Sequence record: NC_048047.1
DNA: 64,000 nucleotides
Direction: 5' to 3' (one strand)
In this document: piece after piece, positions 43,205-55,502 of the stretch
Position numbering within the stretch: position 1 is the stretch's first letter
How the letters are laid out: every line of letters begins with the position of its first letter
Notes under the pieces: generated by a model
Database searches by the model: none
What the model was told of the DNA's origin: nothing
What the model saw: the letters and a program-made list of their open reading frames with translations, nothing else
Position numbers and translations under genes: made by a program

Positions 43205-43427
43205 GGGCACAGGCTTGCCTACTACAGCTAACGCATAATAAGGCTGCTTTAATAGGGTGCATAAAGAATAGCTCCCATGAGGATGCAGGACCTCCCCTGG
43301 AAAAGCTACCGCATAATAAGGCTGCTTATATGCACATCATAAAGAACACCCACAGACAGGGCACATAGGGCTTGCCCATAAAAGCTACTGCATAATAAGG
43401 TAGCTTATATGCATACCATAAAGAACA
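43205..43427. repeat. three degenerate ~45-bp direct repeats, 78-79 bp period, in an AT-rich island
   Basis: AGCTAxxGCATAATAAGG...CATAAAGAA with cores at 43233, 43311 and 43390. Confidence 0.85.
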
Positions 43428-44005
43428 CATGGCTTGCCATGCACATAACCATTCTCCCTCACTATTCTCACCACTAACACTTTTATTATCTATATAAATA
43501 ACCTTATTTTCCATCTATTGGGGTAGTAAAGAAGGAATCTAGTAGATAAGAGAGTAGAAAGGGTTGTGCAGCGTCTGGTTGTATGGTTGCCAGATCGAAT
43601 GGGCGACAGGGAGACACAGATGAGGCCCGCTCCGCGTAGGACGACACTGAAGGGTCGGTTTGAACCTCCATCCGAATGATCACTCTGAGTGCTCTGGACG
43701 GTTCGAGGATAAACCCCGCGACCGGCGAATGGACGACCCCGGAGAAACAATCGCGACTGACGAAGGAGGGCGCAGCCCGAGTGAGGCAGGACGCGTAGCA
43801 AACCTATGGACCTTGAGCTTCCAACCTACGGACCTCCTGGCGTAGCGCCGCTCGAAAATGAGAGGCCCGACCGGCGATCGAGGCGCAGCCGAGGAGACGG
43901 GATGGGAAAGGATTCATGACCCGATGTCGCGTTTCTTGACGTGTGTCACGTGACGTGTCATGAAGGTCCTCGAAGATGGTTAATGCGCCATCCAGGACCC
44001 ACCCG

Positions 44006-48499: not shown

Positions 48500-49222
48500 A
48501 TGCCGGTGCTCGCCAACGCCAAGCAGGAGCTTTACTGCAAGCACCGCGCCAACGGCTTTGTCCCCAAGAAGGCCGCCCAGGCCGCAGGCTACGCCACCGG
48601 CAGCGCCGTCTACCAGGGCCTGGAGGAAGACGCCGACGTCGTCGCCCGCATCCATGAACTGATCGACGAGCGCAATGAGGCCAAGGCCGCGCGCATGGCC
48701 GCCGCCCAGGCCAAGGCCCTGGCCGAAGGACACACCGTCGGCACCATGACCGGCGTCTCCCACGCCTGGGTCATCGAGCAGTTGAAGATGAACGCCGAGG
48801 ACGCGCGCGAGAGCGGCGACTTCAAGGAAAGCAACGCCTCCCTGAAGCTGATCGGCGAAGCCCTAGGCATGTGGGGCGGCGGGCTCGCCGGCAAGGACGG
48901 CGCAGGACCGGGCCTGCTCAACGGTTCGGGCGATGGCCCGATGCTGATCGACCTGGACTCGATCGACAAGCTGATCGGCGTCACCGACCAGTTTCACCAG
49001 ATCGCCCTGGCTCCGCCCGGCGAACTGTCCGTCGAGGACCGCGACATCGCCATGAACCTGATCGCCGGCCAAGGCTCCAAGAATCTGGCGGGCGATCGCC
49101 AGCTTTCCACCGGCAGTGAGACCGACGTGGCTCTGCAACTGCTCGACGCCCTCGACGATGGCGAGAGCGAAATCCCGGCGCGCGAGATCATCCCGCCGCC
49201 GCCTTACCAAGACGAGGACTAA
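48500..49222 (+). CDS. terS: terminase small subunit
   Basis: N-terminal KQELYCKHRANG...KAAQAAGYA HTH typical of TerS; upstream of TerL. Confidence 0.7.
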   Translation: MPVLANAKQELYCKHRANGFVPKKAAQAAGYATGSAVYQGLEEDADVVARIHELIDERNEAKAARMAAAQAKALAEGHTVGTMTGVSHAWVIEQLKMNAEDARESGDFKESNASLKLIGEALGMWGGGLAGKDGAGPGLLNGSGDGPMLIDLDSIDKLIGVTDQFHQIALAPPGELSVEDRDIAMNLIAGQGSKNLAGDRQLSTGSETDVALQLLDALDDGESEIPAREIIPPPPYQDED

Positions 49223-49615: not shown

Positions 49616-52432
49616 GTGACCCTCGCTTCCCATAAGACCGCCCTCTCGCCCTATCCCCATGAGGAGCGCGCCAAGCGCCGCGCCGGTGTGCGCCGTATGC
49701 GCAAGCTCGCCGAGGACATCCGGGCCGATCACGTCCGGGACCGCGAGCAGGACCCCCAGCGCGCGGCTGCCGCCACCGCCATCACCGGCGTGACCGAGCC
49801 CCATCACCAAGTCGCCCTGCTGGAGCAGATCGCCGACAAAATCCAGACCGAGCACCTGGACAAGCTTTATCCGCTGGCCCGTGACGACTTCTCCGCCTTC
49901 TGCGAGGTCATCAGCCCCGAGGAGCCGCCCGAGAGCCCCTGGCACATCTGGCTGACCAACTTCCTGCAAGAGGTCGAGCTTTCGCCCGATCTCAACAAGG
50001 TGGTGCTCAACGTGCCGCCCGGCCACGCCAAGCCCCTGCACGAGGACACCCTGGTGCTGATGGGCGATGGCGCCTATCGGCCGCTCAAGGACATCCAGGT
50101 CGGCGACCGCGTCTGGACCCACGCCGGCCGCGCCCGTCCCGTCACCGCCGTCCACGAGCAGGGCAAGCTCTCCACCGTCGAGATCGTCACCGAGGCGGGC
50201 CGCATTGTGCGCGCCGCCCCCGACCACCCGTTCCTGGTCAAGCTGGGGACCAAGGACGACGGGACCCCGATCGCCGAATGGATCAACGCCGGCGACCTGC
50301 GGCCGGGCATGCCCGTGGTGATATCGGCCCACAAGCCGCCGAGCGTCGAGCACCGTCACTATGACGGCGACCACACCACGGCCGAGACCTACAACAAGCC
50401 CCTGCGCCGGGCCGAGGCCCTGGGCTACATGGCGCTGGGCGGGGCGCTGCACTGGCAGAAGTCCAAGACCCAGGTCACCCCCTCGCCCGACTTCCGTCTG
50501 TCGACCCACAAGCGCGCGCTGATGAAGCACATCGTCAAGCTGGTCAAGACCGGCCTTGGCCACCACATCAGCGTCTGCAAGGTCGCCTCCCAGAACACCT
50601 TCGTCGCCCGCCTGGGCGTCAAGGGTTTCCGTGATCTCAACGCCGGCGACTGGTTCACCTACGAGCCGGAGAAGCGCCGCGTCCCGCCGTGCATCTTCAC
50701 CGCCAGCAAGGACGAGATCGCCGCCTTCCTGGGCGCGGCCTTCTCCCTGCGCGGCGAGGTCATCCGCCGGCTGCGGGGCAAGAACCTGCGCCTCTACCAT
50801 CGCTCTATGGACCTGCTTCTGGACGTGCAGAAGTTGTGCGCCACGCTAGGGGCCGCAGGAAGCCTCGACAGGGGCGATCCTGACTTCGGGGGCCGACCCT
50901 GCTTGAACCTCGACTTCGCCGCTGTGGCAGCCCTCCAGGCGGCCGGAGTGAGCTTCGATGGCGAGACCGACACCGACCTCGTCAATCAGCCGCCCTTCAC
51001 CATGCTGATCCCGCGTCCGAGCGACACCGACGCGGTCGTCTCGGTGCTGCCGGCCAAGAAGGCCCGCTGCCTGTGCCTGACCGTCGAGGAGGACCACAGC
51101 TTCACCGCCGAGACCCTGGTGGTCAAGAACTCCACCTATGCCTCGCGCCTGTTCGTGGCGTGGCGCCTGGGGCGTGACCCCAACCAGCGCATCATCGGCG
51201 GCGGCCACAGTCAGAACTTCGTCGAGAACGAGTTCTCCTCGAAAATCCGCAACATCGTCACCTCGCCGGAATTCCAGCGCGTCTTCCCTGGCATCACCGT
51301 CGACCACCAGACCAACGCCAAGCAGCAGTGGGCGATCGCCGGCTACAAGGGCCAGTACGTGGCGCGCGGCGTGGGCCAGGGCATCCACGGTTTCCGCGCC
51401 ACCTTCATCTGCGTCGATGACCCCTACTCCAAGATCGAGGACGCCAACAGCCCGGTTCACCGGCGCAAGGTCGAGCAGTGGTTCGACGCCGACATTGGTT
51501 CGCGCGCCCTGCCCAACTGCAAGACCTTCCTGATCATGACCCGCTTCCATGGTGAGGATTTGACTAATCACCTGGAGGAGATGAACAAGGTCCTCCCCGA
51601 CAATGCAAAGTGGAAGATCGTTACTGTTCCGGCCATCTGCTTTGATGAAGAAACAGACCTTCTAGGCCGCAAAATCGGTGAGTTTTTGTGGGATTACTAT
51701 CCGTTGTCCTACTTCGTTGACAAGAAGATTCAGTTTGGATTTCTGGGTTTCGCCCTCACCTACCAACAGGTGTCGTCTGCCGCAAATCCCGACAACATCG
51801 CCAGCAAGTTCAACTTCTACGATTCCCTGCCCCACGAGTCGCCTGAAGTTAAGGCCCGCGCCCCTCGCGACCAGTTCGGCAGGCCGCAGATTAACGAGGG
51901 TGATTTTTACCGGCGCACCATCGTCTCGGTCGATACCGCCTCCAAGACCACCGAACGCGCCGACTACACGGTCGTGCAGGTCTGGCGCGAGGATTTCCGG
52001 GGCAAGCACTACCTCGTCCACCAGGACCGCCGGAAGGTCGAGTTCAACGACCTGATCTCGATGATCGAGGCGCCGGCCATCAAGTACCGGGCCGACCAAA
52101 TCCTCGTCGAGGACAAGGGCTCGGGCACCCAGTACCTGCAAAACCGGGGCTCGACCGACAATCAGAAGCGTCAGGCGCCCTGTCCGCTGGTGGCGGTCAA
52201 TCCTGGCGTGGCCGGCAAGAGCTTCCGTTTTGACGGTGTCACGCCCATGATCGAGGGCGGCGATGTCTGGCTGCCCAAGGATGCGCCCTGGATCGAGCAG
52301 CTTCTGGTCGAGATCGGCCAGTTCCCCGACAGCGCTCACGATGACCAAGTCGACGCCATGAGCCAGTACCTCAACCACGCCAAGAAGAACCGCACCCGCT
52401 ACGGCAGTCGCAAGATCACCAAGCACACGTAA
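49616..52432 (+). CDS. terL: terminase large subunit containing an intein
   Basis: Walker A PPGHAK/ST split by the intein; GVGQGIHGFRA, ICVDDP Walker B, LIMTRFH, nuclease SVDTA, LVEDKGSG, HDDQVDAMSQ. Confidence 0.95.
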   Translation: MTLASHKTALSPYPHEERAKRRAGVRRMRKLAEDIRADHVRDREQDPQRAAAATAITGVTEPHHQVALLEQIADKIQTEHLDKLYPLARDDFSAFCEVISPEEPPESPWHIWLTNFLQEVELSPDLNKVVLNVPPGHAKPLHEDTLVLMGDGAYRPLKDIQVGDRVWTHAGRARPVTAVHEQGKLSTVEIVTEAGRIVRAAPDHPFLVKLGTKDDGTPIAEWINAGDLRPGMPVVISAHKPPSVEHRHYDGDHTTAETYNKPLRRAEALGYMALGGALHWQKSKTQVTPSPDFRLSTHKRALMKHIVKLVKTGLGHHISVCKVASQNTFVARLGVKGFRDLNAGDWFTYEPEKRRVPPCIFTASKDEIAAFLGAAFSLRGEVIRRLRGKNLRLYHRSMDLLLDVQKLCATLGAAGSLDRGDPDFGGRPCLNLDFAAVAALQAAGVSFDGETDTDLVNQPPFTMLIPRPSDTDAVVSVLPAKKARCLCLTVEEDHSFTAETLVVKNSTYASRLFVAWRLGRDPNQRIIGGGHSQNFVENEFSSKIRNIVTSPEFQRVFPGITVDHQTNAKQQWAIAGYKGQYVARGVGQGIHGFRATFICVDDPYSKIEDANSPVHRRKVEQWFDADIGSRALPNCKTFLIMTRFHGEDLTNHLEEMNKVLPDNAKWKIVTVPAICFDEETDLLGRKIGEFLWDYYPLSYFVDKKIQFGFLGFALTYQQVSSAANPDNIASKFNFYDSLPHESPEVKARAPRDQFGRPQINEGDFYRRTIVSVDTASKTTERADYTVVQVWREDFRGKHYLVHQDRRKVEFNDLISMIEAPAIKYRADQILVEDKGSGTQYLQNRGSTDNQKRQAPCPLVAVNPGVAGKSFRFDGVTPMIEGGDVWLPKDAPWIEQLLVEIGQFPDSAHDDQVDAMSQYLNHAKKNRTRYGSRKITKHT
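50033..51130 (+). mobile_element. 366-aa intein (Pro1 start, block-F Cys, class-3-like) with degenerate LAGLIDADG region
   Basis: PLHEDTLVLMGDG...IQVGDRV (block A), APDHPF (block B), CLCLTVEEDHSF (block F), VVKN/S end. Confidence 0.9.
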
Positions 52433-52607
52433 CCGCCCCAAGTCGACGATAGCCGACATCTCCAGGTGTCGCCGATCGACGACTTTGACGCCTGCGGGGC
52501 GCGTTAACCATGTTTGTTTACCCTCTTTGGCCCGTTAACCTTAATAAAATCCCAGGTAGTACCAGGTATGGCCGGTACTACCAGCGGTAATACCGGAGAA
52601 AAGCCCT

Positions 52608-53177
52608 GTGTTTCGCTATCTGACCGCCCTTTTCGACCACATCGTCCACTACAAGCTCGCCCCGGCCCATCGCCGCATCGCCCCCGAGGGGCAGGCGGCC
52701 CTCGACCGCCTCAAGGCGGTTGATCGCCAGATCGAGGCCGGCGTCTACCAAGGCAGCGACGTGCGCGGCACCCGCGCCTACGCCTTCCACCACATCCCGC
52801 CGCGCGAGCGCCTGATCGCCGCCAACAAGGGCCGCGACGTCACCGGCCTTACCCCGCGTCGCGAGCGGCGCCTGTCGGTGGCGGGCAAGAAGCCCTGGCA
52901 GCCGCTGCTGGTCACCGAGCCGCCGCGTGATCCCGAGGAACTGGCCCGTGAGCGTGAGGATGAGGCCAGCACGTTGCGCGCCAGCGCCGAGCATCTGGCC
53001 AAGCGCGCGGCCTCGCGCCTGATGCGCCAGCGGCTGGGCGAGCGCTATGCGCCTTACCGTAGCCTGGGCCAGGAGGTGCTGAGCAATGTCGGCCTGGACG
53101 CCACCTGGGTGAGGGCCGGCTATCAGCAGGCCATCGACGATGCTCACCCGATCGCCGCCACGCCGGACGAGGTCTAG
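52608..53177 (+). CDS. hypothetical basic protein
   Basis: 189 aa ORF with typical codon bias after TerL. Confidence 0.65.
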   Translation: MFRYLTALFDHIVHYKLAPAHRRIAPEGQAALDRLKAVDRQIEAGVYQGSDVRGTRAYAFHHIPPRERLIAANKGRDVTGLTPRRERRLSVAGKKPWQPLLVTEPPRDPEELAREREDEASTLRASAEHLAKRAASRLMRQRLGERYAPYRSLGQEVLSNVGLDATWVRAGYQQAIDDAHPIAATPDEV

Positions 53178-53286
53178 GGACCCTGCGTCCAAGCCCTTGG
53201 GGACCCTGGCTGAAAAACCGCCAGGGACCCTGGACAAAACAGGTCAGGGACCCTGCGCCAAAACGGTCGGGGACCCTGGCCAAAAT
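53177..53286. repeat. five GGGACCCTG repeats, 23-24 bp period
   Basis: copies at 53177, 53200, 53224, 53247, 53270; last four followed by an A4-5 tract. Confidence 0.9.
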
Positions 53287-53664
53287 CGCTTCCAGCCCAG
53301 CCGGAAATTCACATCCCCATGCTCCTTTCCCTCACCAGCCTGATCGGCGCCCTGCTGATCGCCGCCGTCGCGGTCTTCGCCCTGTGCGGCGAGATCGACT
53401 GGTGCATTGACGGCCAGTGCGGCTCCTGGCGCGGCCCCTTTGCCCCGCCCGGTCCTAGTTCATCGCTTTCGTGACAGGTCTTGATTTCCTTGGGCTTTTT
53501 GGCCTGCTGTCACGATTCAAAAGGTTTCACGCGTGCCCCGAGCCCTGAAAATCCACCCAAAATGGGCGATTTTGATCGATCTCTGGCTCTGGGCGGCGGT
53601 CCGCGTCTACGCATGGGTCCACAATGCGAGGCCGGAGGCCGGTGCGCCACCCACCAAGTCGTGA

Positions 53665-53694
53665 GACATGTCAAGCCCCCTCGCTTGACATGTC
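53665..53694. repeat. perfect 11-bp inverted repeat
   Basis: GACATGTCAAG-8 nt-CTTGACATGTC. Confidence 0.8.
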
Positions 53695-54103
53695 ATAGTT
53701 TGTCCGAAAGGTGACAGCGTCGGCGCAAAAGAAATCGCGTTGACTCCGCAAACCCAGGCCAGCCTTGACGTTGCGCCATTCTCCGCAGGTTTTGCGGTGA
53801 TTGCCCCGGCTATTCGCCGCACGTGTCAGCAAAACCGCCTATGTGACGTCCTGCTTGACATGGCTCAAGTTCCGTGGCACGGGAAAGGCTCGGGCGTGTG
53901 CTCGGATGGAAAGCTCCGCTGTCGGCTTCAAGCCAAGGCCTGGGTGGAACACCAGCGCTAGACCTGCCCGCCGACGCCCTCGACCCCATGCGATCGCCGG
54001 CGGGGGACCACCGCCTTCGCCTGCCACACCCGGCGAGGATCGAAGGCGAGAAACGCCCACCAGAGCCCGCCGCCCTGGTGGGCGTTTTGGTGTCCGGCCT
54101 TGA

Positions 54104-54298
54104 ACTTGACGTCGGGCCATTTCGCCGCCGACTTGACGTCGGATCATTTGCCCGGCCGACTTGATGATCGCCCATTTCGCCTGGACTTGACGCCGGCGCA
54201 TTTCAAATTTGACGCGAGCGCATTTCCTTCCCAAATTTGACGAAAGGCCATTTCAAACTTGACTTGACGTCATTTCATTTCTTGACCTGACGCCATTC
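54104..54298. repeat. array of TTGACG-N6-CATTT units
   Basis: units at 54106, 54133, 54161, 54187, 54209, 54237, 54259, 54264, 54282, plus an outlier at 53765. Confidence 0.9.
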
Positions 54299-54314
54299 CA
54301 TCCCGCTGGCCGGG

Positions 54315-54530
54315 TAAGGTTAACGGCCGATTAACCATGTGGCGAGTAAGGTTAATTTTCAAGGTTAACGCGCATGGTGAACGAACAGGGTTAACGCGCC
54401 TTAAGGTTACCCGTTAAGGTTAACAGGCGTTAAGGTTAACGGTTAGGGTTGAAAATTAAGGTTAACCCGGCTCAAGGCCCTACCGGCGGCCGTTAAGGTT
54501 AACGCCAGGGGCAAAATCGTTAAGGTTAAC
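54315..54530. repeat. cluster of TTAAGGTTAAC-like repeats including a TTAA-N7-TTAA box
   Basis: full copies at 54414, 54430, 54456, 54493, 54520 plus partial copies; TTAA-N7-TTAA at 54320-54334. Confidence 0.85.
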
Positions 54531-54533
54531 GCC

Positions 54534-54620
54534 CAAAACAGCGAAAATCAGCAAAAATCGTCCAAAAATAGCGAAAATCAGCGCAAAATAGCGCTTTTTA
54601 GGCCGAAAATCACCGAAAAT
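54534..54620. other. phased A-tract region (predicted bent DNA)
   Basis: repeated A4-5 tracts about every 10-11 bp (CAAAACAGCGAAAATCAGCAAAAATCGTCCAAAAATAGCGAAAATCAGCGCAAAATAG...). Confidence 0.75.
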
Positions 54621-54929
54621 CCGGTTTTCTGACCCATTTTAGGGTTAATGTCGCGCCCTAACCCGATTTTGGGCGACACCCAGGCGAACGGGCGCCGGCC
54701 GGGTCGTGATCCCCGGCCGGTGGGTCAGTGGAGCAGCCAGAGCAGAAACGCCAGCGCCGCCAGTGACCAGCCGTTCAGCAATTTCAGGGTGGGCGCCTCT
54801 CTCGTCTGCCGTGGCCGCTCGCCACCCCTCATTCATCGCATACAAGAAAACTGTTGCCAAGCCCCAAAGATCGCTTGACAGCATAAAAGCCCAATGCGAC
54901 AAGAGGCCATCCAAACGGGAGACACCCCA

Positions 54930-55502
54930 ATGACCGAGCAAACCCTAGACCTTCTCTATCCGGCCCTGATGCTGGAGCAGAAGATTCCCCACCGCGAAGG
55001 CATGTTGCGGCTGGCCATCGTCCTGCGCGACTTTGGCCCCAAGGCGCCCCATCGCTACGTCACCCACCTGCGGATCGAAAACCCCGTACCGGGCTCGGAA
55101 CACGCCTTCACCTACAGCTATGACCACGGCACCTATTCGGCCGACCTGCGCCGCGCCACCACGGTCTATTTCGAGCGCGTCGCCGAGCGGGTCATGACCG
55201 CCATGGTCGCCCTTCACGACCTGCCCGAAGTCGCCCCGCCCCCGCCGACCGTCACCATGCCGCTCGAACTGGCCCAGACCGCCTATGGCCTGATCGATGA
55301 CAACGAACTGGACCTGTCCAAGGCCTGCGGCAACGTCACCTTGGTCGAGGCCGCCATTACCGGGCTGGCGGGCGTCCTGGGCTCGCTCAAATACTTCCGC
55401 GACGTCGAGGAAGGCAACGCCAAGCTTCTGGAGGCCTATGAAGCCGCCCAGGCCGCCCGTGACGCCGCCCTGGAGGCCGAATCCGAGGCCGAAGAGGCCT
55501 AA
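54930..55502 (+). CDS. early-type hypothetical protein, cassette 1
   Basis: promoter TTGACA at 54875, RBS GGGAGACACCCC. Confidence 0.8.
   Translation: MTEQTLDLLYPALMLEQKIPHREGMLRLAIVLRDFGPKAPHRYVTHLRIENPVPGSEHAFTYSYDHGTYSADLRRATTVYFERVAERVMTAMVALHDLPEVAPPPPTVTMPLELAQTAYGLIDDNELDLSKACGNVTLVEAAITGLAGVLGSLKYFRDVEEGNAKLLEAYEAAQAARDAALEAESEAEEA

Follow-up and report, generated by a model that had tools for sequence, protein, structure and literature searches.

A conserved array of TTGACG-N6-CATTY repeats in the terminal repeat of Caulobacter phage CcrBL9: probably a protein-binding array rather than a promoter field

Introduction

Why does a large phage carry a row of promoter-like half-sites in its terminal repeat, next to its terminase genes? 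We addressed this question in a stretch of 64,000 nucleotides (hereafter the window; sequence record NC_048047.1) that contains ten units of the form TTGACG-N6-CATTY, in which two short boxes are held six nucleotides apart. The first box, TTGACG, is the −35 consensus of Caulobacter sigma-73. An initial annotation of this DNA described the units as a field of −35 boxes with no −10, and proposed either iterons for a packaging or replication protein or an array at the first-injected end that loads or titrates host RNA polymerase. We conclude that the array is probably an untranscribed, iteron-like protein-binding array and not a promoter field. This degree of confidence covers the generic statement only; that a protein binds, which protein it is and what job it performs are further steps that we infer.

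The window corresponds to positions 248001–312000 of the record of Caulobacter phage CcrBL9 (window position + 248000 = record position), and a 2-kb query around the array was 100% identical to CcrBL9 MH588546.1 (Bertelyvirus, 322,272 bp). Phages of the phiCbK type are standard tools of Caulobacter cell-cycle research, and no cis-acting packaging, replication or entry site has been defined for them. Clusters of CtrA sites have been reported in the direct terminal repeats (DTRs) of phiCbK-like phages, where two phiCbK promoters are activated in a CtrA-dependent manner (Mascolo et al. 2022, PMC9437464). These CtrA-type sites are the only part of the region considered here that is already described in the searchable literature. 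Neither the papers on phiCbK, CcrBL9, Lacusarx and CtrA nor the rest of the searchable literature yielded a description of the TTGACG-N6-CATTY array.

Results

Bipartite units at a single locus

All ten units listed in the initial annotation were present, and all lay on the + strand. Seven were exact matches to TTGACG-N6-CATTY (starting at 53765, 54106, 54133, 54187, 54209, 54237 and 54264), and three had one mismatch in the first box (TTGATG at 54161, TTGACT at 54259 and TTGACC at 54282). Start-to-start spacings along the ten units were 341, 27, 28, 26, 22, 28, 22, 5 and 18 bp. Dinucleotide-preserving shuffles of the whole window contained a mean of 0.05 exact matches and a maximum of 2, and none of 100 shuffles reached seven. 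The isolated upstream unit, TTGACG-N6-CATTC (53765–53781, +), stands 341 bp before the core array and is found at the same distance in CcrSC. The core array itself (54106–54298, +) consists of nine head-to-tail units with the extended consensus cGAyTTGACG-N6-CRTTTy.

Motif counts were made on a unit genome of 300,012 bp rebuilt from the CcrBL9 record. No exact unit occurred in it outside the array locus, and only seven copies with one mismatch were found elsewhere, scattered, with both strands counted. Because the unit genome holds no other exact copy, we regard the array as a single-locus element and not as a motif spread with promoters.

Each unit is bipartite, asymmetric and 17 bp long. The centres of the TTGACG and CATTT boxes are ~11.5 bp apart, so both boxes would face the same side of the helix. 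The initial annotation had pointed to the overlapping pair at 54259 and 54264, and the N6 gap did hold there in both registers. This distal composite (54254–54293, +; containing TGACGTCA) was 100% invariant in the alignment of Bertelyviruses that are ~70% identical in the region, and it recurs in Brevundimonas phage Kikimora and in phiCbK.

The nine core units, all on the + strand, and the 5–10 units of relatives fit the pattern of iterons, in which three or more direct repeats of 17–22 bp share one orientation. The units contained no DnaA, GANTC or CtrA sites, and they lacked the TTAA dyad from which a CtrA box (TTAA-N7-TTAA) is built. Rfam gave no match above noise for the array region, and the predicted single-strand fold was not unusual (z = −1.3). 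A CRISPR-like array was considered and rejected, as the ‘spacers’ would be only 5–11 bp long and the conserved boxes dominate.

Conservation in related phages

The array was found in the same slot and orientation in other members of Bertelyvirus (CcrSC, BL47, J4, C1), in Colossusvirus (Colossus, PW), in Shapirovirus (phiCbK, Karma), in BL10 and RBC63, and in the Brevundimonas phages Kikimora and Bajun, whose terminase large subunits (TerL) are ~45–47% identical. Every phage of the Dolichocephalovirinae that was checked carried it at the same place. The order of neighbours was likewise constant in these relatives: terL, a GGGACCC array, the TTGACG array, a TTA(A/G)GGTTAAC array and the first early promoter.

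Within this group the TTGACG box was invariant across all Caulobacter and Brevundimonas phage arrays. The N6 gap was constant in 76 units from eleven genomes, with a unit-to-unit spacing of 16–38 bp; in phiCbK, Kikimora and two metagenomic contigs, units may directly adjoin one another at a period of 16 bp. The initial annotation had made its case depend on conservation of the N6 spacing in related phages, and the spacing was kept in every relative. Among the Bertelyviruses, 83 of 93 box columns were invariant (89%), versus 62 of 102 columns in the N6 gaps and linkers (61%; Fisher p = 6e-6, with one stretch of the BL47-group alignment out of register in this count). The greater invariance of the boxes points to selection on the boxes and not on the spacers.

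Three distant relatives gave the most informative comparison: Sphingobium phage Lacusarx, Erythrobacter phage vB_EliS-L02 and Citromicrobium phage vB_CbaS-RXM, whose TerL proteins are 34–39% identical over the C-terminal half. All three showed the order terL, TTAACCAT element, GGGACCC array, an array, TTAAGGTTAAC array and promoter. The units of the array in third position read (CT)ATCGAGCG-N3-GCCATTTT or ATGGATCGAGG-CCATTTT and were mostly ~22 bp apart. Thus, the second box (GCCATTTT) was kept, and TCGAGCG-like boxes stood in place of TTGACG. Because box 2 is kept and box 1 swapped in these phages, box 2 is the part with deep conservation, and TTGACG is the version of box 1 found in phages of the Caulobacterales. 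Roseobacter phage DSS3P8, with a comparably distant TerL, had none of the arrays.

A scan of IMG/VR with a three-unit pattern yielded two more viral contigs (L029 and L036), in which a terL homologue precedes the array by 1.1–1.3 kb on the same strand and an array resembling TTAACCTTAA or TAAGGTAAC comes after it. A counterpart in the host chromosome was sought with three-unit pattern scans of genome and metagenome contigs. Among the matches listed, most were tandem repeats of other kinds and none was a Caulobacter locus, and none of the metagenome loci taken from these listings had a terL homologue; for a host counterpart the listings were not informative either way.

Transcription and coding potential

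The absence of a −10 element claimed by the initial annotation was borne out, in that no sigma-70-type promoter was called in 52400–55200. At the distance from each unit where a −10 would lie, we found a variable linker or the next unit.

None of the public sequencing runs contained more than 13% of sampled CcrBL9 words, and RNA contigs of a phiCbK-type relative were placed on the Karma locus instead. In all four RNA-seq runs a long upstream contig stopped at Karma 1724–1766, which is the terminator just 5′ of the array, and the next contig began at Karma 2190–2237, where the first DTR gene has its CtrA-box promoter. RNA depth in these contigs was 0 over both arrays versus ~115–270 on the flanks. 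The contig ends differed from run to run; this scatter looks more like coverage that fades where transcripts really end than like a break that repeats impose at one fixed place. The phage in these runs (X10–X13) has 112 bp of Karma (L013 1406–1519) replaced by 111 other bases, and differs from it by a few percent nearby; it is thus a different phiCbK-type strain from Karma.

The possibility that the array is coding sequence (for example, through the open reading frame at 53839–54234, − strand) was rejected: the array alignment contains 2-nt gaps and an insertion of ~56 nt, which exclude coding constraint. Two + strand open reading frames that cross the 5′ edge of the core array had no family match. 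In BL47, gene gp005c (L004 1655–2188, − strand) is annotated across the array; this annotation is probably spurious, since the alignment has gaps whose lengths are not divisible by three.

Position in the terminal repeat

The CcrBL9 record carries identical annotated DTRs of 22,260 bp, and the right copy starts at record position 300013 (window 52013), inside the 3′ end of terL. The array lies in this right copy, ~1.7 kb 3′ of terL, 2.1 kb inside the inner boundary of the DTR and ~20 kb from the right physical end. It lies within a 1.45-kb stretch without annotated gene between gp519 and gp520. Upstream are the terminase genes: terS (gp513; 48500–49222, +), annotated as the small subunit and matching PHROG 11494, terminase small subunit (E = 1e-42), and terL (gp517; 49616–52432, +), identified as the large subunit by annotation and sequence match. 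Alignment with relatives revealed a helix-turn-helix-like block at the N-terminus of TerS.

The phiCbK terminus was mapped experimentally inside terL, and its sharp left boundary was read as the packaging start (Gill et al. 2012, PMC3556154). The motif of that left terminus, TTTTGTGGGAYTACTAT, occurs once in CcrBL9, at window positions 51684–51700 (+), ~330 bp 5′ of the annotated start of the CcrBL9 DTR; the same motif opens the CcrSC record. BL9, SC and BL47 each have their annotated DTR boundary at a different point of terL, even though SC is 95.6% identical to BL9, and some of these boundaries are therefore probably imprecise. Matching repeats were looked for at the right DTR boundary, and none was there. 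Elsewhere in the window, GC content reaches its genome-wide minimum at positions 43300–43560 (record ~291300–291560), an island of GC 0.36 in a phage otherwise 64% GC, with two copies of a ~50-bp repeat (AAAAGCTAC..GCATAATAAGG..TATATGCA..CATAAAGAACAC).

The surrounding control region

The array is one part of an ordered region, here called the hub. Along the + strand the hub runs from the terL stop through the TTAACCAT element, the GGGACCCT array, a 51-amino-acid open reading frame, the isolated unit and a terminator to the core array; after the core array follow TTA(A/G)GGTTAAC units, phased A-tracts, a TTGACA/CCAATGCG promoter and gp520.

The TTAACCAT element belongs to a 25-nt inverted repeat whose arms, at 52498–52522 (left, +) and 54376–54400 (right), are 88% complementary, 1.85 kb apart, and bracket the hub. 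The element also follows terL in Colossus, and a perfect copy occurs in BL47-type phages. Repeat analysis placed the first conserved array at 53177–53290 (+), where five GGGACCCT units with a 23-bp period are each followed by an A-tract. This GGGACCC array is also found 3′ of terL in Colossus, Karma, Kikimora, Bajun, Lacusarx, RXM and L02, and its presence in these phages makes it at least as deeply conserved as the TTGACG-N6-CATTY array. It is also the nearer of the two to the genome end.

Between the two arrays lies gp519 (53319–53474, +), annotated as a 51-amino-acid hydrophobic protein with no family match. The 600 bp that follow (53475–54090) are unannotated, have a terminator at their end, and may encode a small open reading frame or RNA. 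Positions 53665–53694 within them contain a perfect 12-bp palindromic pair around TTGACATGTC, with a third copy at 53853–53867. The terminator (54051–54092, +), identified by a terminator call and as an inverted repeat, is intrinsic and strong, with a 16-bp stem and a T-run, and lies directly 5′ of the core array. An equivalent terminator is annotated in phiCbK at 1745–1774, and the RNA contigs of the relative end there.

Immediately 3′ of the core array, repeat analysis revealed ~12 direct TTA(A/G)GGTTAAC units that resemble extended CtrA half-sites (54314–54533, +). This array contains a canonical TTAA-N7-TTAA site (54320–54334) as well as the right arm of the inverted repeat. Such sites are concentrated in the DTR, which holds 31 of the 34 TTARGGTTAA copies of the genome and all ten canonical TTAA-N7-TTAA sites, most of the latter as 31-bp palindromes 5′ of a TTGACA...CCTATGC module. 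In phiCbK (L158 2165–2285), an extra tandem array of five GGCGGAGGCCAGGGACCGCCCC units lies between the TTAGGGTTAAC array and gp004; Karma lacks it.

Period analysis then identified A-tracts phased at 10 bp (AAAATC-type units; 54535–54625, +), and from this phasing intrinsically bent DNA is predicted. When 200-bp windows of the genome are ranked by GC content, this stretch falls within the bottom five (record 2440–2639, GC 0.45). The first DTR gene has a promoter module (TTGACA, a 10-nt spacer and CCAATGCG; 54875–54898, +) that recurs through the DTR and, in CcrBL9, stands ~580 bp 3′ of the array. The first gene 3′ of the arrays is gp520 (54930–55502, +), annotated as identical to gp004 and without family match; the gene in this position differs between genera. 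The DTR contains ~ten near-identical modules of CtrA site plus promoter, and none of them has a TTGACG-N6-CATTY unit.

Discussion

A putative docking array

The best reading of these data is that the array provides putative docking sites on double-stranded DNA in a control region at the genome end. A protein that recognizes a specific DNA sequence would contact each unit with a single subunit. Nine such sites, arranged head to tail on a stretch apparently free of transcripts, insulated by the terminator on the 5′ side and with the promoter ~580 bp away on the 3′ side, could permit cooperative loading and the assembly of a large nucleoprotein complex. The array is one of four ordered arrays in the hub, which is non-coding and separates the terminase genes from the early genes of the DTR that CtrA drives. 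We infer that the binder is phage-encoded because box 1 changes between phage lineages. On the same sequence comparison, the resemblance to a −35 box is specific to this lineage, and would be a coincidence of the site, because the distant phages keep GCCATTTT but replace TTGACG.

Several observations weigh against this interpretation. The spacing between units is irregular, 16–38 bp across phages, versus an even ~22 bp in classical plasmid iterons. The proteins encoded beside the array had no Pfam match or PHROG family pointing to an initiator or DNA-binding protein, and a host factor other than sigma-70 is possible as the binder. TerS and the box 1 motif match each other, but phylogeny confounds this agreement. 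Lastly, the gap in RNA rests on assembled contigs of a relative, and is weak evidence because repeats can break assemblies.

Alternative explanations

The most direct competitor is the polymerase-capture proposal of the initial annotation, in which naked −35 boxes load or titrate host holoenzyme. Its appeal is the match of TTGACG to the sigma-73 consensus, together with the invariance of that box in Caulobacter and Brevundimonas phages. However, Lacusarx, L02 and RXM carry TCGAGCG-like boxes in its place and keep CCATTTT, and TTGAC-type −35 boxes are in use in the hosts of these three phages as well. Recognition of a −35 box involves nothing like the constant N6-CATTT partner, and no −10 lies at a workable distance (a spacing of 16–18 bp; in Caulobacter, TTGACGS-N10-14-GCTANAWC). 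The real promoters of the DTR use TTGACA with a CCTATGC-like −10, and no transcript arose in the array in the contigs of the relative. We consider polymerase capture very improbable. A transcriptional role of another kind, with the array as an operator or insulator that acts with CtrA on the first early promoter, agrees with the position between terminator and promoter beside CtrA-type sites, and CtrA activates nearby phiCbK promoters (PMC9437464). It is weakened because the other DTR promoter modules, ~ten in number, lack the motif; the promoter of CcrBL9 is also distant, and nine sites would be excessive for an operator. We judge it unlikely. The same low standing applies to control of DNA entry, as proposed for phage T5, where the hub would bind a protein that pauses or anchors the genome during CtrA-driven early expression. 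Phage T5 has a long terminal repeat with a 1.2-kb gene-free region at its inner boundary, located after terminators and containing ordered direct and inverted repeats (nine copies of DR-D) that are conserved in relatives, and a conserved, ordered, non-coding multi-array region at the inner boundary of a long repeat is also what we found in CcrBL9, bracketed like that of T5 by a long-range inverted repeat. Should packaging begin on the left and ejection run in the reverse order, the right end would lead, with the array at the inner edge of the first-entering 22 kb. The ‘first-injected end’ of the initial annotation is thus doubtful; the right end may lead, but the array does not sit at the tip. 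The polarity of entry is itself only inferred, two-step transfer of these phages was not found in the searchable literature, and the homologue of A1 (gp186, record 127588–129375) lies outside the DTR. The hub also lacks the DnaA boxes that are paired in T5. Even in T5, the injection-stop role of the region is only proposed.

For the job of the array, our pick is a genome-end function, for which packaging and replication are the candidates named by the initial annotation; its word ‘iterons’ fits the bipartite 17-bp direct repeats, the single locus, the conserved boxes and the constant N6. In a packaging site of the pac or cosB type, a TerS oligomer bound to the repeats, which lie to the first-packaged side of the left end, would position TerL for the initiating cut. 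The array is always 3′ of terS–terL on the same strand, even at TerL identities of 35–47%, and there is one locus per genome unit, so linkage to the terminase genes and single presence are both as in pac and cosB sites. The left boundary of phiCbK is the inferred packaging start, and TerS gave an HHpred match to PDB family 3zqp_A (both PMC3556154). The helix-turn-helix-like block of TerS differs between phages with the TTGACG motif and those with the TCGAG motif. We take 3zqp_A to be a TerS of the SPP1/SF6 G1P type, and proteins of that type bind repeated boxes. Known pac and cos sites, however, lie within a few hundred bp of the cut, and the array lies 1.4–2.9 kb from the annotated or mapped left terminus at a distance that varies by phage: 2.1 kb (annotated) or ~2.4 kb (phiCbK-type motif) in CcrBL9, ~1.8 kb in phiCbK and Karma, and 1.4 kb in Colossus. 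As a candidate for TerS binding, the GGGACCC array is just as good and stands nearer to the end, and packaging leaves the tight pairing with CtrA-type sites unexplained. We regard a packaging site as a tentative possibility. The array could also be an iteron-type origin or control locus: an initiator of the phage would occupy the repeats, and CtrA of the host would gate initiation through the adjacent TTAAGGTTAAC array, as it does at the origin of the Caulobacter chromosome. This reading has in its favour the 5–10 direct bipartite repeats, the CtrA-type array beside them, the single locus, the transcript-free interval between terminator and promoter in the relative, and a low-GC stretch that in Bertelyviruses carries A-tracts phased at 10 bp; it would also suit the ‘lytic deferment’ idea of PMC9437464. 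But no DnaA boxes (≤1 mismatch) were found in the hub, no initiator-like gene adjoins it by Pfam or PHROG, the replication genes are 125–155 kb distant, and in phiCbK, Kikimora and Colossus the AT-rich segment does not keep its position. Moreover, replication machinery of the T7/T5 type usually works without iteron initiators. Cumulative GC skew fell almost steadily from the left to the right genome end, marking no internal origin, and was not informative. A replication origin is thus conceivable but rather doubtful.

Significance

The hub is kept from phages of Caulobacter and Brevundimonas to those of Sphingobium, Erythrobacter and Citromicrobium while the surrounding genes turn over, and this conservation amid gene turnover marks it as essential. 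Once the protein that binds the array is identified, an entire clade of large alphaproteobacterial phages would have a defined genome-end function, and a link through the hub between the phage and the cell cycle of its host could be put to the test. More speculatively, and with considerable doubt on our part, the hub might tie the phage genome to that cycle, either as a CtrA-gated origin like the Caulobacter chromosomal origin, where phage iterons lie beside CtrA sites and replication would be delayed until CtrA is cleared, or as a T5-like entry stop outside the T5 family, with the array as the part reserved for the phage’s own protein. If true, this would supply a concrete DNA element for the proposed ‘lytic deferment’ of phages that depend on pili and flagella.

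Comparison with known systems

The array resembles the R-sites of lambda cosB and the pacL/pacR boxes of SPP1 in that repeated short boxes lie near the terminase genes on the first-packaged side, with bent DNA nearby. Unlike those sites, which are a few hundred bp from the cut, it is 1.4–2.9 kb away and variably placed. The iterons of RK2, R6K, P1 and lambda ori share with it multiple direct repeats of 17–22 bp in one orientation, a bipartite unit, a single locus, and AT-rich or bent DNA nearby; the array differs from them in its irregular spacing (16–38 bp across phages), its lack of an adjacent initiator gene and of DnaA boxes, and its great distance from the replication module. The CtrA-site clusters of PMC9437464 are found in the same genomes and the same DTR, immediately adjacent to the array, whose units differ from them in having no TTAA dyad and do not figure in that description.

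Phage T5 differs from CcrBL9 in several respects: the two regions have no sequence similarity, that of T5 has paired DnaA boxes and that of CcrBL9 none, the T5 region is far from its terminase genes whereas the CcrBL9 hub abuts terL, and the A1 and A2 genes are inside the T5 repeat whereas the A1 homologue of CcrBL9 is outside. In architecture, nonetheless, Repeat Region 3 of T5, the proposed injection stop signal, is the closest known counterpart. Both belong to siphoviruses with long DTRs, and both are gene-free stretches of more than 1 kb that follow a terminator and keep their ordered arrays while the neighbouring genes vary.

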